From Cyanophora paradoxa CCMP329 (lineage: Eukaryota > Plantae > Glaucophyta), in NCBI GenBank assembly GCA_004431415.1, contig QPMI01000048.1:124001-188000 (forward strand): a stretch of DNA of 64,000 nt, read 5' to 3'. Position numbers and translations under genes: made by a program. A model generated the notes under the pieces. It was not told where the DNA came from. It saw only the letters and a program-made list of their open reading frames with translations, and did no database searches. The number at the start of each line of letters is the position of its first letter. The stretch's first letter is position 1. This document shows positions 14,946 through 64,000 of this stretch, piece after piece.

Positions 14946-14991
<46 letters not shown>

Positions 14992-16830
14992 CCTCGTTTG
15001 ATTCGCGGCAGGCGGCGGCGCGGGCGGCGGCCGAAAAGGAGGTGGAGGCGCAGCGCCGCATCGCCGCCGAGGTGCGACCCGCCTCTGCCCAACGTTTCTT
15101 AGCGGCGGAGAGAACCTGCGTGCCTTAAGGGCCTTTCACATCGTACGACTCCACCGTAAAACACCTAAGGAATTATGGCTATTAATGCGGCGTTTTGGTC
15201 CCGGGCGCCCTTATGCAAATTAAAGCGTTTTGATAAAGAACGGACGGCTCGGCGTGGCCTGCCTCCTTGCGGCCGCGACCTGACGTGCGGGGGGCCGGCC
15301 CCGGCCCCGGCAGGCGGCGGCGGCGGACGGGGAGCTGCGGCGGCGCCTGGCGGAGCGGGACGCGGAGGCGGAGGCGCTCCGGGCCGCCCTCCAGGCCGCC
15401 CTCCGCGGCGATGCCGACGCCGACGCCGAGCGCGGGGCGGTGCGACGCTTCTCTCTGCTCTCCTTCTCCTTTGCTTACAATTCTTTCTCCCAGGAGGGAC
15501 CCGAGTCCCCGTCCCCGGCTTCGCCCGCGGTGCGGCGGGCTTGGTTTTGGTGCTAGGGCATGGAGCTCCGGTCGCTGACGGGCCGCTCGCTCGCAGGCGG
15601 CGGCGGTGGCGGCGGCGACGGCGGTGCGCGCGGCGGCGGCGGCGGTGCTCCCTCGCCCGACGCGGCGGCGGCGGTGGCGGCGGCGGCGGCGAAGGCGGCG
15701 GCGGAGGCGGCGGCGGCAGAGGCGGAGGAGCGGCTGCGGCGCGGCGAGGAGGAGCTGCGCGCCCGCAACGCCCTCCTCGACGCCCAGGTGATCTCCGCTC
15801 CTCACCGCCCCGATCGCTCAGTCTAGAGCCCTAGCCGTCTGCCTAGGACGCCTCCATACACCGCGGCCGCCGGCATCCTCTCTCCTCGGCGGAGCAGCGG
15901 CCGACGTCCGATTTCCTCCGCGCCCCCCACATTCCACGCCTAGCCTAGCCTAGTACGCCTCTACAATCTCCTACGCGCTCCGCCGGCGCCGACGTCGTCC
16001 TCCACCTCTTACAGCTAGGACGCCGCTCCCCGCATTCCTCGCCGGCGCCGACGTCTTTCGCTCTCGGGCAGGCTCAGTCTAGAGCCCTAGCCGTCGCTCA
16101 GTCTAGAGCCCTAGCTGTCTGTCTCCTAGGAAGGACGCGGCTGACGCCCGCCTCTCCCGGGGCGCCAGGCGGTGGCGGCGCAGGGGCTGCTGCACAAGCT
16201 GGAGGCGGCCGTGGAGGCGGCGGCGGAGCGCGAGCGCCGCGCCGAGGAGCAGCGCCGCGCCACCGACGCCGAGTCCGCCGCCCTCCGCGCACGGCAAGTC
16301 CGGTCCTCTAGGATGCACGCCACATAAGAGGATTTTATGCCGGATGCTAGAAGAGGATCTACACAATATGTTATTAGAGGGTCTAAAGCGCCTAAAGCTA
16401 GCGCCACTGGCGCGCCCTCGAGGCCGAGGCTGCCGCCCTCCGCGCCCGGTCCGCCTCGCTTCCTTAGAAGTAGTCTATAGGCTCTTGATCTAAGATCTCA
16501 TTTATCGGCCCGTTCGTGGTCTTATAGGCTCTTGGTCCTATAAAAACTCCTCGGCCCCCGCTCACGCCGCCCGCCCGCCCCCCGCAGGCTGGTGGCGTCG
16601 GAGAAGGAGGCCGAGGCGCTGCGCCTGCGCGGCGCCGCCGGGCCGCCCCTGCCCCCCAGCGCCGGCGCCCAGGTCCCCGCCCCGCCCCGCCCCGCCCCGC
16701 CCTGCCTCGCCCCGCCCTGTACCCCCCGTCCCGCTCCGCGGCCCCCGCCCCGGGCCAGGCCGCCCCGCCCAAGCCGCGCTGTCTTTTCGCGCGACCCTAG
16801 TTTTCCTATCTGCCCATCTATCTATCTATC

Positions 16831-16864
<34 letters not shown>

Positions 16865-17853
16865 TTCTCCGCCCCGCCCCGCCCCCGCCCCTCCCCGCCC
16901 CGTCTCGCCCCGCGGCCCCCGCCCCAGGCCAGGCCGCCCCGCCCAAGCCGCGCTGTCTTTTTGCGCGGGCCTAGTTTTCCTATCTGTCTATCTATTCCTC
17001 TCTAGGGGGTGTACATTCTTCATCTGCGGATATTGATGTTCATCTGTAGGCGGGTTTTAAATTCCTCTGACCTCGCTTGTCCGGCAGGACGTGGAGTCGC
17101 TGCTGTCGCACCTCGCGGCGCTCGCGGCGGCCGCGGCCGGCGCCGCGGCCGGCGGCGGTGGAGACGAGGCGGGCGCCCAGACCAGGTGCACCAGTCCCCC
17201 CCTCGCCCCCTCCCCCTCCCCCCCTGCTAAGGCACGCCGAGCCACGCGGATCCCCCGCTAGCCTCGCCATGTCCCGCCTCGCCCGCTGAGCGCGGCCGGC
17301 GCAGCGAGGAGGCGGGGGCGGGGGCGGCGCTGACGACGACGACGACGACCACGACGACCGAGGTCAAGATACAGGCCAACGTGCGCCCTCCGGCGAGCCA
17401 AAGCCTAGGCTTAGTTAAACAGAGAGCCAACGTGCGCCTTCCTAGCTAAAGCCCGCCCTCCCGGGGCCGAGGGCTATTAACATCTAGATTCAGGGAGCTA
17501 AGATAGCTATGAACTATTAACTATTTTGGTAGCTATTAACATCTGAGATTCAGGGAGCTAACATCCAGGCCAACGTGCGCCCGCCCTTCTGGGGCCCCCC
17601 GGGGCCGGCGAGCCAAAGCCTAGGCTTAGTTAGCTCGATAAAGAGCTGCGACTGGGAGCTCACCGCCCCCCGGAGGGCAGCCGAGGGCTGGATGCAAGAA
17701 TAGAGGGCCGCGGCCCAGCGCTCACCGCCGCCCCTCTCCCGCCGGCGCAGAGCCGGAGCCAGACGCAGCGCGCGGCGGCCGGCGGCGCCGTCGCCGCCCG
17801 CCTCGCCAGCATCGCCCGCCAGGCGCGCCCCCCCCCCCCCCCCCCCCCCCCCC

Positions 17854-17903
<50 letters not shown>

Positions 17904-42400: not shown

Positions 42401-45400
42401 GTCTTCATTGCAAGTGCAAATCTCACCATCGTGGCGGGTGCGTGATCGTGAATATTATTGTATACTAGTGGCCCGGCCGCGTTTTGGCGCGCCGGGGGTG
42501 CAAGGGGGGAATCGGGATCTAATGAAAGAGTAGTAGTGGCACGAACATGCTCGATATAAGCTCGATATAAGCTCGATATAAGCGCAGCAAGAGAGTACGG
42601 TCTAGATCTGGCCGGCCGGGCGTGCTCGGCTGCGATCAGCTGCAGCGGCGCAGGCAGCAACGCAAGCAGTTTCTAGGCGGAAATCTAGAGGAGACGTTGA
42701 CAGGTAGAGAGAAGTGGTTCCATGCAGAACCGCGCAACGAAGAGCAAGGCGTACGCGACGCACTGCGACGAAGCCGAAATCTACAGGAGACAGCTAGGGA
42801 GAACTGGTTCCATGCAGAATCGCGCAAGGAATTTGAAGACCGGAATGAGAGAGAAGTTGGTTTCCAGGCGTCAAGGCGACGAAAACTGGTCTTCGCCCTC
42901 GAAAACCGCTTTTTGCATGGACGGCCGCAGCGACAAACACGTGGCGCAACCCAATTTCGACCCATTTTTTCCCCACGTTGCAAACTGGACCTCGAAAACG
43001 GCCTCATAGAAGAATTTTGGCTGAAGCGAGGGAACGGGAAGCAAGGGGGTCCCCTTCCCCCCTTGCAATATTGAATAGCCTCACGTTATGTTGATCCAAC
43101 CCCTGTTGACGCCGAGCGGCGCACCAGGTCCTCTCTCGATCACGGCAAGCCGGCTTACACTTCCTGGATCGGATCCCATCGCCGGCGCTGGCTTCAGCGT
43201 CGGCCTGGATCTCCGTGATAGGTCCAACCCCAGCCCACTTATAATCAATTATCCGCTTTTTGACATCCGGTTGAACACAAATGCTAACCTGATTGCGCGC
43301 TTCGGCAGCTACGGAAACGCGATATCCAACGCGAGCCTCTCAACGCTGCCAAAAGTCCTAGCTTATCATGTGGCCTCGACGCCATTGGCTGCTGACGCGC
43401 TCGTGTTTGGATGGTCCTGGGAATCGAACTCCAGCTCGAACTCGACGAGCCTGGATTCAAGCGAGCCCGAGACCTTCATCTTTTTCACTCAGCTCAATCT
43501 TACAGTGTCCTCCACTTGGGCCCTCGAGCTCTCCTCGGACGGCTTTGAGCGCTCAGCGATCGGCTCTTCGTCGACGTTCGTCACAGTCAAGCCAGGTCCG
43601 CGCGCCACACAGCTTTGAGAACATTTACGCGTCTGGGTGGTGCTAAATTGTCGTGTACTCGTGCGATAGATGCCATGGAACCTTGGACGACCGACTTCTT
43701 GACCCTGCCCCGGGTCGCTGTGTCGGGGAGCGAAGCCATTGTTTCGATGCAGCTTCGTGACCGCTTTGGGAACCCCGTCGACGCTCCACCCTGGCAAGCA
43801 GCTTTTGGATTCGACGAGGCTCCGGGAACTCTTTCCGTCGTGTCTGCGGACGGCACGTCGACTTCAGTCCCCGTTCGTTTCGTCTCGGACCCGCTCACTG
43901 GCCTCCTCGAGGCGACCTTTGTCACATCCGTCACGGGAACTGCGCGGCTGGACTTTGCTCTGCGCGCCCGGCCGGGGGCCCCGCCTCTGCACGTCGGCAC
44001 GCGCCCCGTCCTCAACTGGCTCCCAGCGCCCGCGCCGACCGTCGTCCTCGCCGAAATGACGTCGTCCCTTATCGCCGTCCGGTTCAGCGCCGACACGAAC
44101 GCGGGCCGCATGCAGCTCGGGCAGCGGTACCCCGCCGATGCGCTGTTCGACCCAGCGAGCGCTTCCCTGCTCAAGGGTGCGAGCTATTCCATGTCAATGT
44201 GAATCAAACGGCTCCTCTGCTCGCGCTCAGTGCCTCGCAGGAGAGGTCATCTGGAAGGATCGCTCTCTGCTGCACGTGCTCCTTTCCGCATCCAGCGCGG
44301 TCGTCCCGGGGCGGGCGGTATTGCGGTTCCAGCCCGGGAAGGTTCGGACCGCCCTCGAGAACTCGATCTCGATGGATTCGGCCTTCAATCTCTTCGTCGC
44401 CCCGTCGATTGCACCGCCTGTGGCAGTCATAACGGTGCGCCTTCGTAGTTTTAGTTTGCGGTAAAAGAATGCGCCAAGTGACAATAAACTTGATGTTGCA
44501 GGGCCCGAGCAAGTTCTCCGGCTGTTCTGACATCTCCTTCTCTGGTGCCCTGTCCTACGGGAGCAACAACCGGCCGATGATCTACCACTGGAGCGCTCGA
44601 TCGGAGAACGCCACCGCCCAGCAGGCCGCGTCGCTCGTTCTAGACCCGCAGGCTAGCCAGCAGTCGGTCGCCCTGCGCGCCGCCCAGATCGCAACGCTGC
44701 CGGCGGGCGTCTACGAGTTATCTCTCACCGTCTCGACGTCCTGGGGCATGCAGAGCACCACGAGCCTTCGCGTGGAGAAGATCGATCTGCCCGACGACGA
44801 CAACGGCACCAACGTGCACGTGACTTCGATCGCGATCCTCGCGCCCCGCGTGCTGCGCGTCAGAGGCGCCGGCTCTCTCGCTTTGAGGGCCGAGGTCTAC
44901 TCGTGCCGGAGCGATGCAGCGGACTTTGCTTGGCAGGCGAGCGGCCTCGCAACTGCGAACGACAGCGAGGCAGCCGCTTCGAGTGCAGGCGCAGGGCAGA
45001 GGGCGTTCCTCCAGGCCCGCGCGCTGCCTCGCGGCGGAAACGCGACGGTGGCCGTCGCGGCGAGCAGGAACGGGACGGTTGTCGCAGAAGATCGAATCAC
45101 TCTAATCGCCGTGCCCTCCAGAATCGTCGCCCTTACGAGCCCTCGAGGTGCACAGCTCTTCAGCATGTTTTGTGTGACAAGGTGATGTGTCAAACATTCG
45201 CTTCAGGCCTCATCGTCGCGCGCGCGGGTAGTTCTGAGCCGCTGGTGGTCGATGCATCGCTCTCGTTCGATCCCGACGAGCCCGAAGCGGGCTCTGCCGG
45301 GCTGCTTTTCGAGTGGACGTGCTTCGATATGCGCACGGGCGTCTCTTGCGCTAGCGATATCCTAGGAGGTACAATCAAGTTTTCGAGCCGTTTAACGCAT

Positions 45401-48400
45401 GCGTGTTTCCTCGTTTTAATTTACACGTGCGCATGCGTAGATAACGACAACCAAGCCAGGATAGAGATTCCGGGGTCCGCCCTCCAGCGCGTCTCAGGGG
45501 CGCCGGCCTTGCCCGCGGACATCCGCCTGGCCGTCGTCGTCTCCAAGCCCTCGAAAAGGGCGTGGAGCCTGGCGGCATCGGGCGCAGCGGCGTCCGTCCT
45601 CGTGTCGATCCGCGCGAAGGACGAACCCGCGCTCAACGTGCAGGTCCGCCATCTTCACTTTGCTTCGTAATGTTTGTAGAGCTTTCTCGAGCTCGATTTG
45701 TCGCGTTCGCAGGTGCTTTCCGCCCAGCCGCACGCAACGACCGACGTGTTGCGAATCGCGGCGTCGCTGTCGCTCTCCTCTGGGGGCGCTCTGAACAACA
45801 GCGAGGCGGCCTTTTCCTGGAGCGTCTCTCCCGCGTCCTCGCAGTCGGCTTCGGGCAGCATTCTCAGGCCCGAAAACCTCTTGTCGCGGCCTGGCTCCCC
45901 GGTCCTGCTGCTCAAGCCGGGCGTGCTCGACGCGGGAATGTTGTACACGTTTACGGTCACCGCCAGAAATCGTAGCGGACCGGTCTTCGACTCGGGTATG
46001 CGCGCGAAATGTCGCGCTCAGCTGCACATTCCCAGAAACCGAAATTTCGCAGCGTCGGCGTCGGTCGAGTGCGCTTCGCATCCGTCCATGGGCAGACTCG
46101 TGCTCTCCGTGCAAGACGGCATCCTTGTGGCCGCGATGGCCGATTGGACGGATGCTCCGGACCGGCTCCCACTGTCGTACTCCTTCGGCGTGGTGTCGCC
46201 TGTCACGGGCACTGATATCTTTGTCTCTGTGGGGCAGGTGCGCATAAATTAAATCATGTGACGGTGGTACAGCCTAACTAAAGCCCGCCGACAGGCGCTA
46301 CCGTCTTTGTCTATTTCGGGGGCGTTTGCCCGCTGCCTGGCGTACCCGTGCAATCTCACGTGTTTCGGCGAGGTGCGCGATAACGGTAATGATTCTGTTG
46401 CGATTGCACGAACTTGAGAGTTTCTTGCAAGGTGACGAATAACCTTGGGCTGGCGTCGCGCGCGTCGGCGTCGGTTCAGCTGAACGCGACGCTCGCAATC
46501 GCGAAGCTGAATTCGAACTCGACGGCTTCGAATTCGAACTCCAACGCCAACGCGAGCTCGGACTCGGCGCTGCTCCTGAGCGAGGCCCTCGCGGGCAACT
46601 TCGACCCAGTCGAGATGATCCAAAAGGTGCTTGAAATTATGTGTATACGTAGAGCAGAGCTTCGGCGGATTAGATTTACTGTTCGACATCAACTCGGCTT
46701 GCGGCAGGTTGCCGAGCTCGCCCTGCTGGATTCGGGAGCACCCAATGTGCCACTGATCGACGTCCTGCGGGCCCTCAACGCCTCTGCGTCCCTCATCGAG
46801 CGTCTGGGCTCCGACGCGTACGGCCGGTTCTCCGCTCTCGCATTCCTTTCCCTGCGCTCCCGACTCGAATCCGCCGCCTCGAATTCAACCGCCGGCACCG
46901 GCGCCGAGGGCTCGGCAGCGACCGCCGACGCTCTTGAAGTCCTGCTGGCATTCCTTAGGCTGAAGCCCCTCGGGACGGCCAGCGAAGACGCGCTCCTCAC
47001 CTTGCAGACAATCCTCTCCTCGAGCTCCTCTTCGAGTTCCAGTCCTCTCCGCCGCAGCCGCGGCCGTGGCCTGCGCACCGAGACGGGTGGCCTGTCCCGG
47101 GCCGCCGTGGAGGCTTCCTTGCAGTCGCTGGCGCTTGGATCCGCTCTGCAGTGCGGGCAGCAGCCCGTAGCCCTTGGCTCCCTCTCGACCACCTCTTCCA
47201 TGGCCTTCGTGCGAGGTGCGCGTCAGCTCTCTCATCAAGTTTCAATTTTCCGCACGCATGCAAGCTTGAGCTCTCTTCGCCAGTTTGCCAGTGGGCGATT
47301 GATGACGGCAGCGTCGCGGCCTCGGACCTGCAGCTCGCAACGCCCGCCAAGGCCGCCCTGCAGAGCGCGGTCCTGGCCGTCGGGACCCCGTACCTCGCAG
47401 CCATCCGGGCCAGCCCCAGCGACCAGATCCTGCAGGTGGCGGCGTTCGCTCCCGGGCAGCTGCCCGCCGCGTCTCACCCACCCCAGTGCGGCCTCCTTCT
47501 GGTTCTTCGGCTTCGAATTCTGTCCACGGCTGACATGGAAACCACGTGCGCAGGAGCCTCCTCGTCTCCGGCGAGATCTCGCTCGCGTCCCACGAAGTTT
47601 TGTCGAGCTCCGAGCTGCGGAGCTCGTCTCTCGCCTCCGGGACGGCATCGGCGTCGACGTCGCAGCCGCTCGCGACACTGCGGATCGGGTGCGAGACCGC
47701 GTCGCTGGCGGCCCCGACCGGAATGTTCTTCTCCGGTGCGCGCTCTTATATTTGTTAGCTTCTCTTCAACATTGCAAGCGTAAAACTGAATCTTTTCACT
47801 TCGAATTTCAGGATTCGCCTGCGCTGCCCTGGGCTCGAATGGCGGCGCTGGCACTAGCGCTTGGACCCTGACCTCAAACGCCACCCGCGGCTCCGCGGGC
47901 GCGTGCTCGGCCGCCGCGCCGCTCGTCTGCGACCTCTTCGAGCTGCCGACGACGGTCGCGGTCCTGGGGCTCCTCACCCCGCTCCCCTCGGCCACGCCCA
48001 GCCCGTCGGCGCCGCTGTCCCCGACCCCTACGGCAGCCCCCGGCGGCGACGCGCCGACGCCGTCAGCGCAGCCGACGCCGGCGTCGCCGCCGTCAGCGGA
48101 GCCGACCAGTCCGCCGGACCCGGAGCAGACGCCCGCTCCCCAGGGCCCCGCCCCCGGCGGCTCCCTCACGGTTGTCGCCCCCTCGCCTTCCACCGCCCCC
48201 CTCAGCCCTGCCGCTGTCGACCCTGCACCCGGCACCGGCGCCGGCGTCGGCACCGGCACCGACGACCCGCGGCCGGAATCGCCGGCCGACACCACGCAAG
48301 GCTCGAGGCGGGCCGCCCCACAGGAAACCGGAGCCAGCGGCAGCGCCAGCCCCGCCGGCATCGCCGCCGGCGTCGCCGTCGGGATCGCGGTCCTCGCGGT

Positions 48401-48758: not shown

Positions 48759-49537
48759 TGTTATTGTATTAATATTTTAGGGTAGGAAAGCTCTATATCT
48801 TTCACGATTTCGTGATCAGAGCCTCGGAGTCTCTCAGAGTCTAGACGGCACTTGTGTTAATATTTGATCGTATTTCGTATTTTCAGCCTTATGATATCGC
48901 CGAGTAGGCCGGGCCATATGCATGATCATGATGAGGAGCTCGAGCGCTAGCTCGGGCCGCGGGCCGCCGGGGGCCCGCGGCCCGCAGAGCTGCAAACAGA
49001 ATTCGGATATTAATGTGCATGTGTGCATGTGCATGTGCGTGAACGTTGCGAGTCGGGAGGTGCCGCGGTACCGGTGATCATGATGAGCTCGGAAATGTTG
49101 CGCATCGATATCGGCCCCAGTGCGCTTCGCCTTCGCGCGGCCGCGCGTCTCGCCGTCTCCGGCGGGCGGCGGCAGCGCGTCTCTGCGACAGCGATCGTCC
49201 TAGAATAATTAATGACGTCCTTTATAGCTAGCTATAATGAAATGAAATCGATGCAAATGTTAATATCAATCTAAATACGAGAACAAGCACGTGTGCCCTC
49301 AAAGTTCGACAAGGCGCTTCCAACACGGGCGGACGTCTTCCGGATCTGTGGGCGAAGGGACCAAGAGACGGTGTGGTGCTATATATAGAGCCAGGGGCGC
49401 GGTACCGGTGGCGCTCATATGATCGGCCCGAGGGCGGATCCGGAGCCGGATGGGGGGGAGCAGGGAAGGATAGAGCAGGGAAGGGGGAGGGGGGAGTGGG
49501 TCGTGCAGGGGTACAGAGGTCGCGTGGGTCGGGCTGC

Positions 49538-52500
49538 TCAGCCGAGGTTGCGGTTCTGGGGCGGCTCGTACTTCATCTCCAGCACCTCAAAGACGTCCTG
49601 GGGTACGCGATTTAGAGTGCAGAGGGGGGAGGGAAGGGGTACGATAGCGAACCTCCTCGCGGAAGACAGGGAAGGGCCGCTCCTCGCTAATGATCGCCAT
49701 CTGAGGGTAGAGTGAGGGGTACTGGATGGGGACAGGGGGGTGGAAAGGAAGGGGGTACGCGCCTGGCGGTCGCGGGCGACCCGTCGGATGGTTTTCTCGC
49801 TCAGGCACATCCCGAGGGTGCGCGCCTGCGCGCGCGGGGGGTACACGTTTCACGCCGCGAAAGCCAGAGGCGTGACGAGGGGAGGGGGAGGGGCGCGCCT
49901 TCAGGCGCATGCGGCGGTTGAACAGGCCCGATCCCGTGCTGGCAGAAGAAAGAACAAGTCAGGGGAGGCGACGGGGGCGAGAGGGGTACGGCGCACAAGT
50001 AGAGGAGGGAGCAGGCCCAGTGCTCGTAGGGTACGACGATGACGTCCAGGCGGCGGTGGGGTAGCATTTTGGAGGGGTCCTTCTCGTCGGGAAGCCGGCA
50101 TACCCCAAAGAACCGCTGAGTCGTCACTGGGGGTACGGGATTACAGGTCAGGGGGCACGGGAACGGGGAGGACGGTACGGAAACGCACGGCGTGGGGCGT
50201 CGGCGCCGGGGGGTAGACCCTCGTTGTCGGTCGAGAGGCTGAAGGGGTACAGACAATCAGAAGGGGCGCATCGGGGGGGTACACTGATGGGAGGGCGGAC
50301 GTCAGCGTATCCGTGAGGAAGCCGCTCGCAGAGAGCGTCTCGAGGATGGGCTGCGGGGGTACGTGAGGCGCGCGACTTAGGGGGGGGGGGGGGCGGGCGG
50401 CCCGCGGCGTACCCCCAGGGCGCCCATGTGCTGCGATTGGCCGAAGTCAGGAAGGGGAAAAAGCCGGCGGGGTACCATGGGAGGGGGAAAGGCGCACCAG
50501 GGTACCGCTCGGGTGGCTCACAAGCACGTCGCAGTCCCCACAGTCAGCCTGCGATCAAATTTGGATCGAATCTCGGATCGAATTCGAGAGGCCCCGGCGA
50601 GCCGGCGCACCTTTCCGCGCCGGAAGGAGCCACAGCAGACGACCAGGAACCCCGGGTCGATCTTCCGCGCGGCCAGTTTCACCTCGTGCTCGATCCGTGC
50701 CACCTAGAAGGGGGTACACGGACGTTAGCACTGTAGATGACATAGGGGGTACATGGTTGAACCTCGGCACGCGGGATTCGCTTGAGGAAGTCCTGAGGGG
50801 CGCGGGTAAGAAGGGGGGGGGGAATTTGGCCGGGGGTACGGCGCACATCGCGCAGGCGGAGGCCGATCTGCTGCGCCGAGTTGAGCTCGTCGCGCTGCGG
50901 GCGTTCGGGACCGTCAGCTCAGATCTGAGAATCCGGCCCCAGCGCAGAGCCGCCCGTCCCCCCCCCCCCCCCCCCCCCCCCCCGGATCAAATTGCGCACG
51001 TGCTGGACGAGGTCCTCGAGGGTCCTGTACCCCCTCGCGTACAGGTCCCGCGCCGTCTTCGGTCCAATCCCTGCGACGGGGCGTGACTCGAAAACAGGGG
51101 CGGGGGGGGGGGGGGAACTTGAGAAAGGCGTACCCCAGATGGTCTGGAAGAGGACGTAGGTCTTTAGCGGGTCGGTGTGAGCCATGTTGCGGATCTGCGG
51201 GGGGTACGGGTCGAGTTAGAGGACGGGGGTACAGGAACGGGCCGCGGGGACGCCGACGTACCCGCTGCAGCGTCCCCGTCGCGATGATCTGGTCGACCTG
51301 TGCGCGCGAACTGAGACTCCGTACCCCCGGGGAACGGCGTACCCTGTCGGACTGACCTTCTCGATGACGCCCTTCCCGATGTTCCGCATACCCTTCAGGT
51401 CAGCCCCCTCCAGCACCTGTGGCGGAAGGAAGGAAATAAGAAGCGGGAAACAAAACGGGGCGGAAAAGGGCGCGGGTTCGGACCTCGAAGGGGAGGTTCT
51501 TTATGACGATGGCGGCGCGGCCGAGGGAGTAGGCGCGGAAGCCATCGTTGTGGAAGCCGCGAGCGTCCGATAGCTCCTTAAGCTCCTCCAGCACCTTGGC
51601 TCTGCCGCCCGCAAACCAAAGATCAGCTTGTTGTTGTCTTTGGATCAGATCAGATTGGATCAGATCAGATCTGACACTGACATCTTCACGTTTGCCTCGA
51701 TGGGCTGCGGGCGCGGGCGGTCCGGCCGCTGCGGCGGCTCGCCCTCCCGGGGTACGCGGGGCCTCCGGTCCTTCGAAAAGTCCCAGGGGGACAGCACCTG
51801 CGGGGGTACAAGCTCAAATCTCGCATCTGGGCGAAATCTTGAGCGAGATGCATCCCGCACCAGGCTGGGGTCGACTCCGGAGGGGAGCGGTTTGCTCGTC
51901 GCGCCCCCCTCGTCCATGCGGGGGTACCACCGCCTCGTCTCGCCTGGCCACCTTCGGCCGGGTGGGCGGGGGCCGCGGGGGGTAGCGCGGGGGTAGAAGG
52001 GGGAAGGGGTACCGCTGCATCCAGGAGCGCGGGTCAGTCCTGTCGGCTTCGCCGCGGGAGAGGAACTCTTCCAGCGCTGCGGGGGGTACCGGGTTCAGGC
52101 CGGGGGGAGGTGGGGGGGGGAGCGGAGGGGAAGGAGAGGGGGGGAAGGGGGGGGGACTGACTTAGGGTCGGGGAGGAGCCCTCCTGGTCCAGCTCGGCGG
52201 GGAACACAGTCCTGGGTACGGAGTTTGGTCTTGGGGCCCGAAAGGGGGTACAGGCGGGGAAAGGCGGACCGGCAGGGCGGGGCGGGGCAGGAGTACCATG
52301 CGCCGGACGACAGAGCGAATTTCGGGTCCGAACAGTTCGGCGCCTGCGGGCGTGCGTGGCGCGTGGGCGGGCGGCGCCGGCGCAGCGAACAACGGCGACA
52401 ACCAAAGCGCACCTGCCACGCGGCGGCGAGCTCGCGCTGGCGGATGCGGGCGATGTGCGCGGCGCTCGCCTCGCGCGCCTGCGCCGCAACCGCCCACACC

Positions 52501-54349
52501 GCCGCCGCCAACTCCTGCAGGCCTGCGCCCCGCCCCGCCCCGTCGGTCCCGCTCGGAATCCTCGCGCGGGCCGGGGGCGGGGGCGGCGCACTGCGCGGGC
52601 GGCGGGGCGCGTCGTCGCCGGAGTGCCGCCGCTTGCCGGCGGCGGGTCCCGAGGGGCCGCCGAGATCCATGGCCTCCTCCGGATCCCCCTCGCGCTCGCG
52701 CTGCGTGGCCGGCACCGACTCGCCCGCGCCGCCGCCGGCGCCGGTCCCGGCGTCGATGCCGCCCCACTCCTCCTCCTCCGCCGCCGCCGCCAGCGCCGCC
52801 TGGCCCCGGGCAGCGTCAGTCGCAGCGGGCGGGCCCGGCGCTGGCGCTGGCGGCGCGCCTGGTGGACGAGCTGCGCGGGGGCGTTCGCGAAGCCAAGGTA
52901 CCGTGCCAGCAGGCCTGCCGTCCGCGTCGACGTCCCCGTCCCGCCCCCGCCCGAGCCGCCCTGCGCGCTCGACGTCAGAACGAGGACCGGCATTCAGGAG
53001 CTGGCCACGGGAGGCGCCGCACTGCCGCCTGGTGGTCGTCTTCGAGCTCTGTCTGCGTGGCGCCTTCGCCTTCGTCCTCGCAGAGCCTCAGGCGCCGCGC
53101 GCGGCGCGGCGGGCTGCCGCCGACGCTGCTGCTAGGGCCCTCCCGGCCGGGCGAGCTCGGCCCGGTGGCGGCGGGCGGGAGCAGGAGCGGGGCGGCGGCC
53201 GCCAGGAAGCCGTACGCGAGGCCGCCGTCGTCGTCGGGCGAGCTGGGCGCGTGCGCCGCCGGCTTGGCGGGCGACGGAGTGGCGCCGACCCACTCTCCGC
53301 TCCTGAACCGGAACTTCCTCCGCTTCCTCGTCGCGCCGTCGGCGGCCGCGCCCGGCGACGCGAACGCGGACTGGCTGTCGGCCCACAGAAACTGGGAGGC
53401 CGTGAGCTGCTCGCCCCCGTTCGCCGCCGCCCACGCCGGGCACGTCGGCGGCGGCGGCGGAGGGGGCGGCGGAGGCGCCCCGAGCAGCGTTCGGCACGTA
53501 GTTGCCTGAGACATCGCCTGGGACGGCTCCGCCGCGGCTGCTTCCGGCAGGTCGCCCGCGTCCATGGCGAGGCTGCAGCTGAGGAAGTCTTCCGCGCTTT
53601 CGTGCGGCCTCAGGCGCTCGCGCGGCGACGTCTCGTCGCCGTCGGCCGCGGCGCCATGCTCCGCGCTGGGCGCTGGCTTGAGGGCCCCGGAAGAAGAAGA
53701 AGAGGAGCTCGCGCGGGGCGGGGCGCTCCGCGGAGAAGCGGCGGGCGATGCGGAAGCGCTGGAATGCGCCCTGGGCGTCAGTGCGACGCTCGCCGGCCGG
53801 ACGCTGCTGCCGCTGCCGCTGCTGCTGCTCGTGTCCGGTCCGGCAGTCGGCGTCGCGAGGACCACGTAGCCCTCCTCCGGCATGCGCTTCTTTTCGTTCG
53901 CGCACGCGATGAGCCACTTGGGGTCCACGAAGTGCGCTTTGGGGATCTGGGAGCGCGCGTCGGTCAGCCAGGCGAACGTGCTCCCTCGAGGCGGGAAGCA
54001 GAGGCGAAGGGCGAGGTCGAGGCGGGAAACAAACCTCGCTGAGACGAAGGTCGTCGGCGATGCCCTTGAGCGAGCGCTTCGTGACGACGTGCGTGGTGCG
54101 GCCGGGCTCCAGCTTCGCGTGCACCGCGAAGCCTGCGGTCGGGCGCGCGCGCGTGAGCGGAAGAGCTCTAAGGGGATAGTCTGCAGCTCTGGGGAGCGTG
54201 GTGAGAGGCGGTGGCGGACCGAGCTTGACCGCATTCTCTCGCAGGATCTTGAGGCGCGGGCCGCCGATACCGGGCTCGTGGATGTACACGGCCACATCCG
54301 AGACCACAGCGGAGGCGACCGGACTGGCCTTCTTCTTCTTCGGCGGCAT
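49538..54349 (-). CDS. POLL: DNA polymerase lambda (X family): BRCT, very long low-complexity linker, 8-kDa lyase and polymerase domains (multi-exon)
   Basis: NLS-like MPPKKKK. BRCT: VYIHEPGIGGPRLKILRENAVKLG..TTHVV..HFVDPKWLIACANEKKRMPEEGY. Lyase: FRAYSLGRAAIVIKNLPFE..NIGKGVIEKVDQIIATG. HhH: IWG|IGPKTARDLY. Catalytic CGSFRRGK|ADCGDCDVL and HRRLDVIVVP; YF|TGSGLFNRRMR; EE|DVFEVLEMKYEPPQNRNLG*. Confidence 0.9.
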
Positions 54350-54412
54350 CAGCCAGCCGCGCCGCTTGAACTGCAACCGCTGCTGTACCCCAACGTCGCG
54401 ACCTTCAGCCCG
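54350..54412. promoter_or_regulatory. 63-bp head-to-head interval between POLL and LMF1 start codons
   Basis: ATG(-) at 54349 and ATG(+) at 54413. Both N-termini lead in frame into conserved domains. Confidence 0.55.
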
Positions 54413-57400
54413 ATGCGGAGGCGCGGCGGGGCCGGTGGCGGGGAGGAGCGCGGCTCTGGAGACGATGCAGACGCGCGGGCGGCCGCGCCAGATCCGCCGC
54501 CACCGAAACCTACCAGCGGTACCTCCCAGAAGCCCGCGAGCGGCGCTCCGGCGTCGGATACGTACTACGCCACCCGCATTGCGATCGTACGCCTGTTGAA
54601 TGCCGTGTACTTGGTGCGTGCGCTCTCTTCCGATTACCGACCAGGCCGCTCACGCGCAGCTCGGCGCCGCTCGCACGCTTGCGTGCGCAGATCGCTTTCG
54701 CGGTCGGCTTCCACCAGCTGCTCCCGCTGGTCGGCTCCCGCGGCTTGCTTCCCGCTCGGCTCTACATGGAGCGAATGCGGTCGGGCTACTGCGGGGCGAC
54801 CTGCGCGTGGGAAGTCCCCTCGCTCTTCTGGTTCGTTCCGGAGGCCGACCTCGACTCGGCGATGCGAGTCGCGTGCGCCTCGGGCGCGGCCGTCGCCGCC
54901 ATTGGCGTCGTGACAGGAGCCTCCAACTTCTTCCTTATGATGGCCCTCTGGGTCCTGTACACGAGCATAAGGAACATCGGCCAGGCGTTCTACGGTGCCC
55001 GGGCCTTGTATGCATGCGCGCGGTTCTGGCTATAAGCTGACGCGCCGCCGCAGGCTTCGGTCGGCCGCCCTCCTCCCACCCCCCCTCCCGCACCGGATCC
55101 GACTGACGCTCCCCCGGCCCGCGCAGGCTGGGAGATTCAGGTAGCCCCTCTCTCCGCCTGCGTGGCTGCGCGGTGCCGACGCGCAGGTACCCCCCCTCAG
55201 CTGACCGAGACCGGGTTCCTGGCCGCTTTCCTGTGCCCCCTCTTCTCCCTCCGGCCTGCCCCCCGCTCCTCCCCCCCCTCCCGCCCCGTCATCTGGCTCT
55301 TCCGCTGGCTCGCCTTCCGCATCATGCTCGGCGCGGTACCCCCGTTCACTTCTCTCCCGTACCCCTCCCGCGCCCGATTCTCTGTACCCCCAGGGCCTCA
55401 TCAAGATCCGCTCGCACGACACCTGCTGGCGCGACCTCACGTGCCTCGACTACCACTTTGAGACTCAGGTACCCCTCAGCCCCCTCGCAATCTTCCCCCC
55501 CGCCTCCTAACCTTGTACCCCCGGCAGCCCATCCCCAATCCCCTCTCCTGGTACGTCCACCAGCTTCCCCACGCCTTCCAGGTACCCCCCCCTTCCTCCC
55601 CCTCCGCCGCCCGCTCTCTTCGCCATCGGGGGTACGCCGACCACGTCCTTTGGTGCAGGCGTTCCAGGTCCTCGTGAATCACGTCGTCGAGCTCGCTCTA
55701 CCCTTCCTCGCGATGCTGCCGTACCCCCTCCCGCGCCGCCTTCGCCGGCCGCTCCGCCTCGCCTGCGGCGCCGCCTTCGCGCACTTCATGCTGGGTATCA
55801 TAATCAGGTTCGCTGTGCGGGTTCGAATCCCGCCGCGCCTCTTCCTCTCTCACCCCGGTACCCCCGCAGCGGCAACTACTCCTTCCTCAACTGGCTCACC
55901 ATCGTACCCTGCCTCGCTTTCTTTGACGACGCGTTCCTGGTACGGCGTACCCCCCTGGAACTCTGTACTCGCGTCTAATTCCGGTACCCCATCATCAGCT
56001 CGGGGGCTCTGGGTACCGTCCCTGGCTCTTCTTCTGCTTCCTTCTACCCGGCGAGTTCGCCGCTGCCAAGGCCGCCGCCTCCTCTCCCCCCATGAAGGCG
56101 CCCCCCCTCCCCAGCCTTATTCTCCTCCTCTCCCCCCCCCCGTCCCGGGTATCTGAACCTTCAACAGGGCCGGCTGCGTACCCCCATTCGAGCCGCCCGG
56201 GATCTCGTCCTCGTCGCCCTGATCGCGTACCTCTCCCGGGGTCCGTACCCCGCACCTGCCCCCCCGCTCTACGTACCCCCCTCCTACTAACCCTCCGCGA
56301 ACAGGTCCTGTCCACAATCTTTTCTTCGCGGACCAGCAGGTTCGATGATGTACCCCGGGTCAATGTTCCCGACCCGACTCGATCCCAGGTTATGAACACG
56401 TCCTTCGACAAGTTCGCCCTCGTGAACACATACGGTACCCCTTTCCATCCTGCCCCGTACCCCGATTTCGACGCGGTACCCCTAGGCGCCTTTGGCACGG
56501 TGGGGAAGCAGCGCCCGGAGGTCGTGCTCCTGGGTACGAACGACACACACATCGGCCCGGGTACCGTCTGGCGCGCCCCTATTCCCTCTCGCACCGCCTA
56601 TACCCACTTTATTACGCATTACCCCTCTCCCTTCTCCTAGGAGGGAGTACGAGTTCAAGTGCAAGCCGGGGAGCGTGGGGCGGAGGCCGTGCGTCGTGGC
56701 GCCTTACCACCTCCGCCTCGACTGGCAGGTGAGGAAGCTGGGGGAGGGGGGGGGGGCGGGGGGGGAAGGGGGGGAAGGAGGAGAGGGGGAACCTGGGCCC
56801 CTCGCGGGCGTGGCGGAGGCGTTGGGCGCGGTAGATCCTCTCATACCATCCCACCCCGGCCGAGGGCCGAGGGCAGCCCACCCCTTTGCTCCTCCCTGAC
56901 GGCGGCTCCGCCCCCCGCCCCCCCCACCCCCACCCCACCCCCACCCCCAAAGGTGTGGTTCGCGGCGATGTCGTCGTACCAGCAGCACCCCTGGCTCGTC
57001 GCCCTCGCCGCCAAGGTCCGCCCCGCCCCCCGCCCCCTAGGCGTCCGCCCGCCCCGCCCCGGGCTGCTGGCTTCCTCCTCGTTCCTTATCATGCGCCCGC
57101 CCCGCCCCGCCCCGCCCCGCCCCGCCTAGGCTCTATTGGCCCGCTAGATCGCTTGCTGCACGGCTCCGCCCCTTTCCCGCCGGTCTGACGGGCCGCGGGC
57201 CGCCGTCAGTTCCTGCGGGGGGACGAGGGGGCGCGCTCGCTGGTCGCGGGGGACCCCTTCGAGGGCGCCTCCCCTCCCGCCTTCGTCAAGGTGCGTCAAG
57301 GCCTTCTGGGTCCAGAATGGGATAGGGGTAAAGGGGCCGAGGGATTTAGGACGGAGGTGCGCGGCGACGGAGGTGCGCGGCGACGGCGCGGCGAACTGAG

Positions 57401-58203: not shown

Positions 58204-59342
58204 TCACGGCCCGGGTCTGCAGGCGGAGAGTGTGAGCTCAACTGGACCGAGAGAGGGGCCCGCAGTCGCGGAGCGAGCTTCAGGCACCTGTAGTAGGGGT
58301 TCTGCGGGGGCGGCTGCTGCGGCGCGCTCGGCTGCCCCACAGGGTACGGCGGGGGGTACTGCGCTTGCGGCGCCACCTGCCCTTGGTAGGCCGTGGGGTA
58401 CAGCCCCGCTTGCGGCCCGGGGCACGGCGGCTGGGCCCCGGGGCACGCCGAGATTACGGGTACAGCGACGGGGATGTAGGGGTGCGCGTGGGGGTGCTCG
58501 TGCTGTATGCGAGTCGGCGATGGGTGAGGGGGGGTACGCGAGCTCGCGAGCGGAAAAGGGGTACCTGCGCGTGGTGGTGCACGTGCAGGTGGGGATCCGT
58601 GTGGTAGTGGTGGTGGTGGGGGTCGACGGCGACCGGAATGGGCTGCCGGAATGTGAGGGGGGTACGCGCGGTCGGGGGGGTACAGGGCGCACGGCGTAGG
58701 TGGTGGGGAGGAGGGGGGCCTCGAGGAGGTACGTTTCGTTCGCCTCGCGCACGATCTCGGGGAGCTGCGCGCGCGCGCGCGCGCGCGCGCGCGTCGGCTG
58801 CCGCGGCGCGCGTGCGACCGTGCGGCTGGATCCGGCGCTAGGGGGGCGCACCAGGCAGAGATCGATCAGCCAGCCTAGGGAGCTGGTCAGAGGGCGGCGG
58901 CGAACGCGCAGCGCGGGCTGCGCATGCGCACCGACTCCGAAGAGACCGGCCGTGCAGAAGTAAAGAATGCCGAGGCAGTAGTGTCCCACGTAGATCCTGC
59001 GCGATTGGCGCGTTCCAGTCACGCCGTGCACAAGCGAGCTGCGTGCGCGTCCGCGCCGCACCTGTGCGCGCCGAAGAGCCCGACAAGCCTGAGAATCGAA
59101 GATTCCAGCGTCACGTCAGCGAGGCGTGCGAGTGAAGAGCGTCAATATCCCTCATGCTTGCTGTAGGGAGCTCGGGTAGCTGGGGCACGAACCCGAGCGC
59201 CCTGTGCGGCGACGGGTCGGAAAGGGCGCATCAGCGACAGCACAGGCGGGGCAAAGAGCGAGGGGAAAGAGCACCAGAAGCAATAGGCCAGGCTCAAGTT
59301 GTACCTATAGCCGCGTGCGATCAGCGGCGAGGCGAGGTTCAT
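58204..59342 (-). CDS. TM2-domain membrane protein with Pro/Tyr-rich tail
   Basis: MNLASPLIARGYRYNLSLAYCFW|LVGLFGAHR|IYVGHYCLGILYFCTAGLFGV|GWLIDLCL|LPEIVREAN.., matching the TM2 pattern G.HRFY.G...G..Y..T.G..G.W..D. Tail ..YPPPYPVGQPSAPQQPPPQNPYYR|PGP*. Confidence 0.85.
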
Positions 59343-59496: not shown

Positions 59497-61929
59497 ATGC
59501 GGTCGATACTGCTCCTCCTGGCGCTCCTGGCACTGTGCGCTTGCTGCTCCGCGGCAAAGGTTGCAGTTACAGCCGCTGGAGAGGCCGTGGGACTCGCGGG
59601 AGTGCCGATCTGCGCTCTGCGCGGTCCCAACATCCTCGCCGGTGAGCGCCGTGCCTACGATCAAAGAAGGCTTCTGAATTTCGATATGCAGGCGACGAGG
59701 CCTGCGGCACGCGGGAACCGACCCAGCAACAGCAGGCGCGGGCGGCCGCAGACTTGGCGCGACCAGACGGGGCCCGGGCGCGCCGCAACCTTCTTCAGGC
59801 GGCGGTCGATGCGAGACCTTTCATTGTGGACGTCTATTTACACCACAGCGCGCCCGCGCCCGCCTTCCGCCCGACGCTCTGGTTCTGCCTTCCTCGCGCG
59901 TGACTCGCGCGCCGCGCTCGCTGTCCCGTACGCGCAGTCATCGATGCCAACGCTCCTCCGCCGCCGGATGTTCCCTTCGGGGCCGCTTACGTGGACCAGG
60001 TACGCGCTCACTGTTTGAAAACGCTGTTGGCTCGGGCCCCCAGCCTCGGGGACGGCGCCGCAGCGGCCGACCGGGGGCGCCGGCATGGCCGCAGGTTCGG
60101 ATACTGAACCAGGTCTTCAGCCCAACGATCGCGTTCCGTTTGGCGCAGGCGCGCGTCGTGCAGGAGGTGCGATCAAATTCGAAAGGCACATTTGATCCGC
60201 GGCGTCTCGAGCGCCGCGCCGCAGCCGCGCTGGCGCACCATCGCCCAGGAATCGCAGGAGGAGATCGACATGAAGGCTGCTCTTCGCGTGGTTCGCGCGC
60301 TCCGTTTCGACTCGAGCGGGCGTCTTTCTCTTCGATCCGCGGCTGAGCTTCGATCTTCGACGCAGGGCGGGGCTTGCTCGCTGAATCTGTTCGTGGTGGG
60401 ATCCGCCGGTGAGCGCCGAAATTAACTCTTTTTACCCGCCCCGTTCTGCCTCTACCCGTTTTCCACGCCCCCAGTGAGCTTCAGCGGCGCTATCCTCAAC
60501 GGGTGGTCGACGGTGCGCCGCGCCCCGGTACCCCCACCGACCTTCGGGCCCGCCTTGCCCACGGATACCGGTTCCGGTCAGTTCGCAACGGACCTCGGCT
60601 TTCGGCCCCAGCTCGACGGCGTCGTGATTCAGGAGTTCACTCTACCCGTCGGGCCGCGCTCCCGCAACGGGGGTACGTATACGCAGATCGCTTCGAATTC
60701 CACTCCGCCGGCCGCGCCTTTCTCACCGGGATTCGCCCTCCTCCGCCTCCGCCTCCGCCGCGCCGGCAGGGAAGACCGCGGTGCACGAGGCCGGGCACTG
60801 GCTCGAGCTCTACCACACTTTCCAAGGCGGCTGTCCCCCGGTCCGCTTCTCTCTCCCCCCTCCTCTCCCCCTTCTTTCCGCTACGTTTGTCTGATGGATT
60901 TACGGAACAGGTGGGCGATGACATCCTGGACACCGCGCCGCAGGCCTTGCCGCTGGCGCGCCGTACCCCCATCCCCCTCTGCGCCCCCTCTTTGACTTTC
61001 TCGTACCCCCATCCGCTAGTGGGACTGCCCCGTGGGGTCGCGCTCCTGCGGCGACGAATTCGATCTCGATCCGGTCTTCAACATGATGGTGCTGTACCCC
61101 TTGCAAGTCGTGTACCCCTGGGTGACGCTTGGGCAGGGGTACACGGCGTGCAGGCGAGAGTTCACGCCCGGGCAGCGCGAGCGCGTGGCCAGCTCCGCTT
61201 CGTTCTACCGTGGCTGCCCCCAGCACGACGGTGAGTGCCGTACCCCCCCTCTTCAATCATGTACCCTTTCCGACTCGTCCTTGCGCTGCGCAGGGAGCGG
61301 CCCCATCGGGGGGCTGGTGCCGGGGTACAGCAGCGAGTCCTCCTCGTCCTGGGGGATCTCTCTACCCCCCCAGGACCCCCTAGCGCTGGCTGCCGGGCTA
61401 CCGGCCGCGCCGCTTCGGGCCGCCGGGCCGCCCCCAGCCGCTTCCAGGACCAGTACCCCCACGTCCACCCCGACAGGCACCCCTAGCGCCACTTCCGCCC
61501 CTCCCGCACCGTCCCCAGCTGCGACGGGTACCCCCACCTCCACGGAAACCGCTACCCCGCCAGAGCCGCCCTCCCCTTCCCCCTCCCCGACGCCATCCGA
61601 GGCTGCCGTCCCCGTCTCCCCTCTCGAGACGGCGGCCGCCTCCGCGCCCCCGTCGGGGCCGTACCGCGCCCCGGCCCTTCCCGCCGCCGACGCCGCCGCC
61701 GGCAGCCTCTCTTGCGCGGGCTCTGCGAACGGCATCCGGTACTGTCCCCGCGGGTGCTCGAAGTTCTTTCTTTCGCGTTTCTCATTCATTGCGATCGAGC
61801 CTAATTCGTCTTCTTTTCCCCCTTGCTTTTCGAATTCGCAGGTTCTTCTGCTGCCTGCCGAGCTCCTTCTGCTGCCGGGAGGGCGACGTCTGCGACCCGA
61901 CCCGCGGCTGCCGTTCCGCGGGCTCTTGA
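59497..61929 (+). CDS. Secreted zinc metalloprotease, peptidase M43 (pappalysin/ulilysin-like), with Pro/Thr stalk and Cys-rich tip
   Basis: Signal peptide MRSILLLLALLALCACCSAA. Cys-switch-like ACGTREP; IVDVYLH; QVRILNQVFSPTIAFRL; EIDMKAALR; SLNLFV; DGVVI. Zinc motif GKTAVHEAGHWLELYHTFQGGC (60784-60816); GDDILDT; Met-turn DPVFNMM|GYTACRREFTPGQRER. TPTSTPT stalk; end FFCCLPSSFCCREGDVCDPTRGCRSAGS*. Confidence 0.85.
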
Positions 61930-62203: not shown

Positions 62204-64000
62204 ATGCCGAAGGCGCAGAAGCGCAGCCCGGAGCCGCAGGCGCCCGTCGAAGACGCAGCTGTGAAAGTCTACATCCACGAGCCCGGCATCGGCGCCCCGC
62301 ACGCCAAGATCCTCCGAGGGACTGCGGCCAAGCTCGGTCCGCTGCCGCCGCGAACCGCGCTCTCCAGAGCTGCAGGCTGTCCCTTCGATCGCGAACTCTC
62401 CCGATCACGCGCGCGCCCCGGCCGCAGGCTTCGCGGTGCACGCGAAGCTGGAGCCCGGCCGCACCACGCACGTCGTCATGAAGCGCTCGCTTAAAGGCAT
62501 CGCCGCCGACCTTCGGATTAGCCTCGAAGAGATTCCGAACCGGGTGCGCAAAATTCGCGCTTTTCGCGGCAGCGGGCCTGGGCCGGCCGCGGCCGCGGGG
62601 CGCATGCGGAAGCGCCTGACGCATCTTCAGGCCGCCCTTCATTTCGTGAAGCCGGAATGGATCGTATCTTGCGCGAATACAAAATCGCATTTTTCGGAGG
62701 CGGGGTTTGCGATTCGCGAGGAACAGACCCTCGACCTGGCTGCAGCGCGAGCCCTCGCTCTGGAAAAGGCGAAAGCCCAGCCCGGCGTGACGACCTCCGT
62801 CGTTGTTGGATCGGCGTCGAGCCCAATCCGGACTGTCCTGCTCACCACAGCAAAACCGAAGAAGCTGCATGCGCAATTGCGAGCCGCAGCCCAGTCTGTA
62901 GAGAGCAGCTGCAGGCGCCCGCTGGAAGCTGATTTCGCGGCGGCCGCTGAATCTGGAGCATCTTCAACGGCTCCGGCGGACGCCGGCCCCGGCGCCGAAA
63001 GCTCACAGGACGGCTCAAGCTCGCGCAGCCGGCCCGAGCAGAGCACGACTTCGTCCTCGATCGAAAGCTCGTCAGCTGCGCTCGAGCTCGAGCTCGCTAG
63101 CAGCAGTACCCGAGCATCAGCTGCAGCTCACGGGTCCCCGGAGGACTTCTTTCTTCGGGTTTCGTCCGTTTTCGCGACGTCGACCGTCCGCTGCACGCCC
63201 TCCAGCTTCTTCCTACCTCCGCTTCTGCCGCCGCCCCGACTCCCCTTCAAATCAGAAGCCGGATCCGAGGTAGCCAACGGACAACATGAGTGCCCGACCG
63301 CCGCTCAGCGGCTCTGGAGTGCCAGCGGCGATTCTGCGTTTGAAAATCCGATCCGAGGTCATTCCAGCGGCAACGAGCATGACACCCCTGCGAATGTTTT
63401 CGCGGAAGAGCAGTATTTCCTCTCTGCGGCTGCGGCCGAAGAGCTGCACCGCAGATCCCAAATATTTTCTAAGCATCCGCGACTCGTGGAGACCGAAGCA
63501 GAGCCCTTGCCACCTCCGCGACCTGTGCGAAATTTAAGCATGCGCATGACTTTCAATTGTGGAGTGCCCTGATTTTTGCACTGGCGCAGGGCGGCTCGGG
63601 TGCGGGAGGGACGGCGGCGGCACGGACGGGGGGCCTGCTGGCGCGGTACCTCGGCTTCGCGAACGCCCCCACGCAGCTCGTCCATCAGGCGCGCCGCCCC
63701 CGCCCCGGCTGTCCCGCCACCGGGCCCGCCCACTGCAGCTGACGCTGCCCGGGGCCAGGCGGCGCTGGCGGCGGCGCCGGCGGAGGAGGAAGAGTGGGGC
63801 GGCGGCGCGGGCGAGTCGGTGCCGGCCACGCAGCGCGAGCTCGAGGGGGACCCGGAGGAGGGCATGGACCTCGGTGGCCCTCGGGACCCGCCGCAGGCAA
63901 GCGGCGGCACTCCGGCGACGCGCCCCGCCGCCCGCGCAGTGCGCCGCCCCCGCCCCGCGCGTGGTATCAGAGCGGGGCCGACGGGGCGGGGCGGGGCGCA
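62204..64000 (+). pseudogene. Second, inverted and diverged Pol-lambda-like copy (BRCT plus linker visible; continues past right edge); possibly a pseudogene
   Basis: MPKAQKRSP..VKVYIHEPGIGAPHAKILRGTAAKLG|FAVHAKLEPGRTTHVVMKRSLKGIAADLRIS..HFVKPEWIVSCAN, with the first intron at the same position as in POLL. 63588-64000 closely matches the reverse complement of ~52520-52962. Apparent indels in C-runs (~63700, ~63880) break the POLL reading frame. Confidence 0.65.

Follow-up and report, generated by a model that had tools for sequence, protein, structure and literature searches.

Genes of the window and the densest cluster of GTACCC

The window analysed here is a stretch of 64,000 nucleotides (nt) from Cyanophora paradoxa CCMP329 (contig QPMI01000048.1), the model glaucophyte. 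Glaucophytes are among the three lineages with which the plastid-bearing eukaryotes began. The Cyanophora genome has a G+C (GC) content of 67.6%, and its genes are unusually intron-rich, with 9.2 introns each and a mean intron of 86 base pairs (PMC6704402); the window agrees with this. In one survey Cyanophora is the sole species in which the GC content of exons is not above that of introns (PMC6142364). The subject of this work is a short word, GTACCC or in its longer form GTACCCC, that is concentrated in several genes of the window. Counted on both strands, GTACCC occurs 127 times, compared with 19.0 ± 4.2 (maximum 28) in 100 dinucleotide-preserving shuffles of the whole window. The clusters of copies show a strong strand bias that follows gene orientation, the preferred strand being in every case the sense strand of the gene in which they lie. 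This sense is set by a ubiquitin-like domain at 6688-6942 (minus strand), a myosin head (Pfam PF00063, plus strand), a polymerase X gene (minus strand) and LMF1 (PF06762 and PF25179, plus strand).

The densest cluster, at 49500-52290, contains 32 copies of GTACCC/GGGTAC, while shuffles give 1.66 ± 1.37 (maximum 8). An earlier, sequence-only reading of the window had estimated about 30 copies against about two expected, and this was right. The region consists of about 24 mini-introns of 54-85 nt between exons of 30-130 nt, and the intron density of about one per 100-130 nt between 49.6 and 52.3 kilobases (kb) is extreme. Contigs from three RNA-like sequencing runs were aligned to 49400-55399. 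These runs were taken as RNA as they hold about half of the sequence words of the stretch, like transcript assemblies; a fourth run resembles genomic DNA. At least 27 splice joints between 49.4 and 55.4 kb are agreed by the three runs. The 15 joints that were listed all delimit introns of 54-80 nt with GT-AG or GC-AG ends on the minus strand. The exons between the joints encode the Pol-beta/lambda catalytic domain, and the sequence LLY|FTGSGLFNRRMRLK spans the intron at 49939-49996. Twelve of 19 RNA-supported introns carry the word. The cluster and seven of its introns, all seen in RNA, are as follows.

49500-52290, minus strand: 3' half of the DNA polymerase X (lambda-like) gene, with 26 of 32 copies on the sense strand
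49598-49652, minus strand: 55-nt intron with two copies, the donor GTTCGCTATC being followed by GTACCCC and the 3' copy reading GTACCCCAG
49701-49762, minus strand: 62-nt GC-AG intron with two copies, the first 4 nt past the donor (GCGCGTACCCCC)
49939-49996, minus strand: 58-nt intron beginning GTGCGCC-GTACCCC, its donor fixed by the conserved LLYFTGS across the junction
50239-50300, minus strand: 62-nt intron with two copies, the 3' copy lying after a branch-like CTGAT and reading GTACCCCTTCAG
50704-50762, minus strand: 59-nt intron with a copy 10 nt past the donor and the 3' end CTAAC-N8-GTACCCCCTTCTAG
51195-51261, minus strand: 67-nt intron with two copies and the 3' end CTAAC...GTACCCCCCGCAG
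51298-51356, minus strand: 59-nt intron with two antisense GGGTAC and no sense copy, an exception to the sense-strand rule

The donors of the RNA-supported introns read GTGCGCC, GTCCG, GTTCG, GTACG or GCGCG, and GTACCCC lies inside the intron. Copies at the 5' end are found a few bases past the donor, as in GTGCGCC-GTACCCC (twice) and GCGC-GTACCCC. Copies at the 3' end stand just before the acceptor (GTACCCCAG, GTACCCCCAG, GTACCCCTTCAG and GTACCCCCCGCAG) and lie downstream of CTAAC- or CTGAC-like sites where such sites exist.

The remaining clusters named by the sequence-only reading were all found, at 5302-5872, 7880-8911, 12176-12913, 19421-19559, 55187-56564, 58342-58683 and 60528-61533, as was the intron of about 58 nt described as holding three copies, which lies at 12633-12691 with copies at 12633, 12656 and 12680. 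The very long gene of lower GC content (about 50-57%) at about 21000-48700 on the plus strand has PKD and REJ domain matches and is polycystin-1-like. It had been said to show only background levels of the word, and indeed 21-44 kb holds 11 copies, approximately what composition predicts. There are also almost no copies in long GC-rich parts of the same transcription units that hold clusters, namely in the genes for myosin and the polymerase (13.5-19.3 kb and 52.4-54.4 kb). For a start of the clusters 0.7-1 kb past the ATG there is weak support. Within the first 700 nt of gene models the word is present in 2 of 14 short introns, beyond them in 30 of 61, and in myosin long stretches free of the motif are also found farther along the gene. 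The pattern of a code marking gene bodies does not hold. The word is not spread across gene bodies but sits on the sense strand near both ends of short introns, and the apparent gene-body clusters are stretches with short introns every 100-130 nt.

Exactness and position of the word in short introns

Introns across the window were predicted with a parser that uses a codon model, the single-base composition of introns, GT or GC...AG ends and a prior on intron length, and that is blind to the word. It recovers 14 of the 15 RNA introns exactly, together with the three 5' introns of LMF1 around micro-exons. Its boundaries are approximate, and neighbouring introns are sometimes merged across a tiny exon. 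The set of 110 introns obtained in this way was used to sort the 127 copies.

Sense strand, in introns: 64 copies
Sense strand, in predicted exons: 23 copies
Antisense strand, in exons: 10 copies
Antisense strand, spanning a junction (exon GG plus donor GTAC): 6 copies
Antisense strand, in introns: 5 copies
Outside gene models: 19 copies

Two copies that the parser places in exons (8528 and 8561) were reassigned as intronic, since the Pfam myosin match stops at ...HVFYQ before 8528, which brings the introns to 66 sense versus 5 antisense copies. The density on the sense strand is about 6.3 copies per kb of intron versus about 1.1 per kb of exon.

Intron interiors, defined as the intron minus the donor hexamer and the last 3 nt, contain 50 copies versus 4.8 ± 2.0 (maximum 12) in dinucleotide shuffles. 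The 15 RNA-supported introns alone contain 14 copies versus 1.5. The sequence-only reading had allowed that the enrichment might disappear once introns are shuffled, or might be fully accounted for by a GTAC donor consensus together with polypyrimidine tracts. Neither is the case: the excess outlives dinucleotide-preserving shuffling of the interiors, and most copies are not the donor, the RNA joints placing most donors upstream of the word. A composition artefact is ruled out by the shuffles of the whole window, of intron interiors and of 30- and 60-nt blocks, and by a distribution of C-runs opposite to that of the word.

GTACCC is the most over-represented abundant 6-mer of the interiors (37 versus 7.5 under an order-2 Markov model). 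For the 7-mer GTACCCC there are 35 exact copies, and no single-mismatch variant occurs more than three times. The seventh position is C in 61 of 64 intronic copies and the preceding base is A in one of 64. Among 85 intronic occurrences of GTAC, CCC follows 61 and precedes only six, so the word is not merely a palindrome within a C-rich strand. The presence of an exact word in otherwise unrelated intron sequence suggests constraint.

Within the 76 short introns of the GC-rich genes, of which 32 carry one to three copies, the positions are sharply defined. A copy starts at 0, where the word itself is the donor, in eight cases and at +4 to +10 in ten, while 19 start 8-22 nt before the intron end with a mode at 12 (GTACCCCCGCAG); few are found elsewhere. 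With the intron divided into sextiles, 15, 3, 5, 2, 5 and 13 copies are counted from first to last, whereas CCCC runs peak in sextiles 2 and 3. On the RNA strand, GTACCCC is a short exact word of C-rich spliceosomal introns of about 55-70 nt.

The introns and clusters of the other genes, together with a contrast set, are listed below.

55141-55200, plus strand: LMF1 intron seen in RNA contigs, after micro-exons of 6 and 14 nt, with the 3' end GTACCCCCCCTCAG
55336-55393, plus strand: 58-nt LMF1 intron with three copies spaced by 23 and 25 nt, GTACCC itself being the donor
12633-12691, plus strand: predicted 59-nt myosin intron with three copies spaced by 23 and 24 nt, ending in GTACCCCCGCAG
8528-8801, plus strand: myosin-head cluster, in which GTACCC at 8528 is the donor and the copy at 8561 is intronic, judged by the end of the Pfam match
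8625-8691 and 8796-8853, plus strand: motif introns of the myosin-head cluster, from the parser
5302-5872, minus strand: cluster in a HERPUD-like gene, with motif introns 5455-5517 and 5583-5640 and exonic Tyr-Pro and Val-Pro copies
58342-58683, minus strand: eight sense copies, four in a predicted Tyr/Pro-rich exon and four in intron sequence
60528-61533, plus strand: cluster in the gene labelled M43 by the sequence-only reading, with motif introns 60528-60581, 60956-61019 and 61231-61293 and exonic Tyr-Pro copies
44177-47811, plus strand: contrast set of nine predicted introns of 62-83 nt in the 3' part of the low-GC PKD/REJ gene, none with the word

At 55336 the RNA contig breaks off at the donor GTACCC and resumes with the exon after 55393. 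The HERPUD-like gene has an N-terminal ubiquitin-like domain, and Pfam did not confirm the M43 identity of the gene at 60528-61533. Of the four exonic copies in 58342-58683, three encode Tyr-Pro (G-TAC-CCC) and one Val-Pro (GTA-CCC). The contrast introns are A+T-richer, with 28% C and 51% A+T.

A probable auxiliary splicing signal and its alternatives

The copies on the sense strand of short introns, near both ends, favour the splicing element that the sequence-only reading had listed among its options, and GTACCCC probably is an auxiliary splicing signal at the intron ends. The core signals of these introns are weak. Their donors follow the consensus GTNCGCC, for which 59 of 76 short introns have C at +4 and 42 of 76 have G at +5, and GC donors account for ten of 76 (13%). 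The acceptor region is C-rich and then reads CGCAG, and CTRAY branch words are present in only about 30% of the short introns. With such signals an auxiliary one is plausible. From the location, strand, exactness, position and enrichment of the word, and from its ability to serve as a donor, we infer binding of a factor and an aid to splicing. GUACCCC would be recognised near the two ends of the intron by a sequence-specific factor, preferably at the donor or 4-10 nt 3' of it, and between the branch-like site and the acceptor. Once bound, this factor would help to define introns whose GTNCGCC donors pair poorly with U1, which have GC donors or which have few branch words. Candidates are a KH-type poly(C)-binding protein like Mer1 or a complementary RNA. 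An Rfam scan of the window gave no small nuclear RNA and no other family. More tentatively, GUACCCC may be the recognition word of an intron-definition system specific to the glaucophyte lineage. The two ends of the mini-introns would then be marked by a dedicated factor, be it a protein or a small RNA that contains the complement GGGGUAC. In a genome whose donors scarcely pair with U1, this factor would take over part of the recognition by U1 and of the polypyrimidine tract, and the synonymous codons of neighbouring exons would be shaped by strong selection for the word. We regard this extended form as rather doubtful.

Several observations weigh against a splicing signal confined to introns. 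The word is not required for splicing, because 44 of 76 short introns in the GC-rich genes, and the nine examined in the low-GC PKD/REJ gene, splice without it. Donors beside 5' copies are, by inspection, not visibly weaker than other donors. A further point is found in the exons, where copies stand at conserved protein positions.

50029-50034, minus strand: exon copy GTC GTA CCC TAC, encoding the conserved VVPY of the polymerase palm, in an RNA-supported exon
55904-55909, plus strand: exon copy ATC GTA CCC TGC, encoding the conserved TIVPC of LMF1, within the Pfam PF06762 match

A further verified exon copy encodes YPTR of myosin. The sequence-only reading had noted that exon copies use codons that are rare here, and its example ATC GTA CCC (55904), like GTC GTA CCC (50029), lies in a verified exon, GTA being rare for Val. 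It had also asked whether synonymous sites prefer the word, and they do: exons contain 23 copies of GTACCC versus 9.9 (maximum 17) in synonymous-codon shuffles, which makes it the top 6-mer. Of the 14 Val codons that precede CCC, 7 are GTA, versus 11 of 285 elsewhere; with two mis-called cases removed the share is still 5 of 12 (p = 1.5e-4). In Tyr-Pro codons the base before TAC is G in 15 of 16 cases versus 39 of 83 for other TAC. This codon preference is unexplained by an RNA signal acting in introns only. Nor does such a signal predict the antisense excess: in the clusters, shuffles of local composition give 9.0 sense and 2.7 antisense copies, where 82 and 20 are observed.

These last results are the strength of a cause at the level of DNA, by which the double-stranded GTACCCC/GGGGTAC would be favoured by a sequence-specific DNA process and the sense bias would mirror the C-rich sense strand of the introns. 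Such a process could be a DNA-binding protein with homotypic clusters of sites, a methyltransferase coupled to short-patch repair or some other mutational attractor. Fold enrichment is similar in both orientations within clusters, exons exceed synonymous shuffles for the reverse complement (10 versus 4.0) as well as for the word, the intron at 51298-51356 has its two antisense copies, and the one-mismatch neighbours of the word are strikingly rare. The antisense signal is, on the other hand, partly derived. About nine of the 20 copies arise where an exon ending in GG meets a GTACG donor (exon-GG|GTACG) and two are GGGTACCC overlaps, and the choice of Gly-Tyr codons that create GGGTAC is unbiased (p = 0.30). 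The sharp preference for both intron ends, opposite to that of C-runs, is not expected from a process acting on DNA, nor are the near-empty GC-rich segments 13.5-19.3 kb and 52.4-54.4 kb expected from a uniform mutational bias; and SBP-box binding and DNA modification would fit the placement of the word relative to splice sites poorly. It is mainly the position effect within introns that makes us rank a DNA-level cause below an RNA signal, and we consider it unlikely. Its mutational variant in which GCGCCC decays to GTACCC as a scar of methylation, another option of the sequence-only reading, is unlikely too: the intermediates GTGCCCC and GCACCCC occur only twice and once versus 35 exact copies, and the first CpG deamination would be expected to destroy the CpG needed by the second. 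If the word is a mark on DNA, the exon codon bias would be an unusual instance in which a non-coding code prevails over codon usage. Nanopore data for Cyanophora strain CCAP 981/1 have been published (PMC12695648).

The word could also be a relic of the origin of the introns, either as copies of an introner-like element or as splice-junction duplication 'echoes' with conserved ends. It does form a direct repeat near both intron ends, with regular spacings of 23-25 nt in the three-copy introns 12633-12691 and 55336-55393; intron density in the polymerase gene is extreme; and bacterial-derived genes of Cyanophora with 13-27 introns imply intron gain on a large scale (PMC6704402). We nevertheless find this origin distinctly improbable. 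Outside the word, the motif introns of this window are no more alike than shuffles (best local alignment 13.4 versus 13.0 ± 0.34). In-register junction repeats (2.03 versus 1.89 in controls) give no target-site duplication, and matches of terminal inverted repeats (4.12 versus 3.96) are not above controls, so that a young introner family is rejected here. The offsets from the splice sites vary by several nucleotides, phase 0 in 20 of 31 motif introns is as for ordinary old introns, and the exon codon bias is left unexplained. Insertion scars of the form X-revcomp(X)-X would give ACCGGTACC or GTACGT contexts and were also rejected, given the rarity of a preceding A and the lack of an ACCG prefix. 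Least probable in our view is that GUACCCC is the core signal of a second intron class, serving as the 5' splice site where the intron starts and as the branch site where it ends, where the A of the word is about 10 nt from the acceptor. U12-type introns, whose donor and branch site have UCCUU in common, would be the parallel. GTACCC is a used donor in 55336-55393 and the donor of eight predicted short introns; one of these, 8796-8853, is beside the FYQ junction of myosin, at which the parser misses the donor at 8528. YTNAY is absent from seven of the 19 introns that have a 3' copy, which leaves the A of GUAC among very few candidates, and one survey suspects a transformed minor-spliceosome machinery in Cyanophora (PMC10639083). 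Yet in RNA-supported introns the used donor is mostly 4-10 nt upstream of the word, as the conserved LLYFTGS junction confirms in one case. GUAC pairs badly with the conserved branch-binding GUAGUA of U2, and CTRAY and YTNAY show no difference in frequency between introns with and without a 3' copy, for which reasons we rejected the 3' copy as a canonical branch site.

The splicing signal that we favour has partial counterparts in known systems. A precedent from budding yeast is Mer1, whose KH domain recognises the intronic enhancer AYACCCUY close to weak donors; the CCC triplet of the enhancer is essential (PMC3082912). Like the Cyanophora word, this enhancer is short and intronic, has the core UACCC and lies within 25 nt 3' of a donor that pairs poorly with U1; the 5' copies of the word lie 0-10 nt from donors that are GC-rich and a poor fit to U1. 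Mer1, however, acts on four meiotic introns, whereas the word, found in ordinary genes and there in about 40% of short introns, has a second site before the acceptor (half of the copies are at the 3' end) and shows the exon bias. Letters 1 and 7 also differ, being G and C in the word and A and U in the Mer1 enhancer. Short GC-rich introns of vertebrates contain G-triplet and C-rich enhancers, recognised by hnRNP H/F and PCBP. These too are repeated near both ends of small introns and aid borders that lack U-rich signals, but they are degenerate (GGG or C-runs), unlike the word, whose seven letters are exact and always begin with GUA. U12-type introns have the donor /RTATCCTT and the branch site TCCTTAAC 10-15 nt from the acceptor. 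They resemble the motif introns in having a shared pyrimidine word at the donor and near the acceptor, a short 3' distance and no classical polypyrimidine tract. The word differs in being usually off the cleavage site, in the absence of the branch-site AAC (no AAC follows any 3' copy) and in being far too frequent, the published count of U12-type introns in Cyanophora being 77. Neither a TCCTTAAC-like branch nor the word exactly at the 5' cleavage site is found as a rule, the donors being mostly GTGCGCC, GTCCG or GCGCG and lying 4-10 nt upstream. Introners and introner-like elements of Micromonas, Aureococcus and fungi are cited in PMC6142364. They share with the word-bearing introns a restriction to genes and to the sense strand, and the setting of intron-dense genes in an intron-gaining alga. 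Introners, though, form families whose members are almost the same over the whole intron and often carry target-site duplications and terminal inverted repeats, whereas motif introns share the 7-mer alone.

A literature search on the word with introns, on Cyanophora splice sites, on introners and on U1 found no description of the word, which is apparently lineage-specific. An exact seven-letter word at both ends of many introns is a concrete handle on how Cyanophora introns are recognised, and it should improve gene prediction in a genome whose authors call for manual curation of the models.

Further features of the genes

The polymerase X gene has an inverted paralog. The two copies, at 52524-54289 (minus strand) and 62267-64000 (plus strand), have first exons that are 81-86% identical, and the second runs past the end of the window. 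Searches for contigs encoding the first exon of this second paralog and for homologous proteins gave no match. On the sense strand of the polymerase gene, 50947-50993 (minus strand) is a run of about 30 G, which was passed over as a repeat in the alignment of sequencing runs. Other homopolymer or simple runs inside genes are a poly-C at 10325-10358 (plus strand) and a poly-C/(CA)n intron at 17827-17970 (plus strand). The motif-free introns 51602-51681 (minus strand) and 9217-9288 (plus strand) consist mostly of GATCTGATC-type words and may be palindromic insertion scars.

Near its start, LMF1 has two micro-exons on the plus strand, 55054-55059 (6 nt, GCTTCG) and 55127-55140 (14 nt, GCTGGGAGATTCAG). 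Both are confirmed by RNA contigs, which between 54995 and 55197 contain 15 letters from them.

In the myosin gene, introns of a second class occur at 10700-12450 and 14000-17300 (plus strand), of 120-250 nt, rich in CTAG/TAGC and without GTACCCC. Zones of these long introns alternate with zones of short C-rich motif introns. One predicted long intron contains a tandem duplication of 135 nt (16687-16821 and 16869-16995, plus strand) with 86% identity, and these young duplicates differ in the word: copy A has TGTACCCCCC where copy B has CGCCCC.

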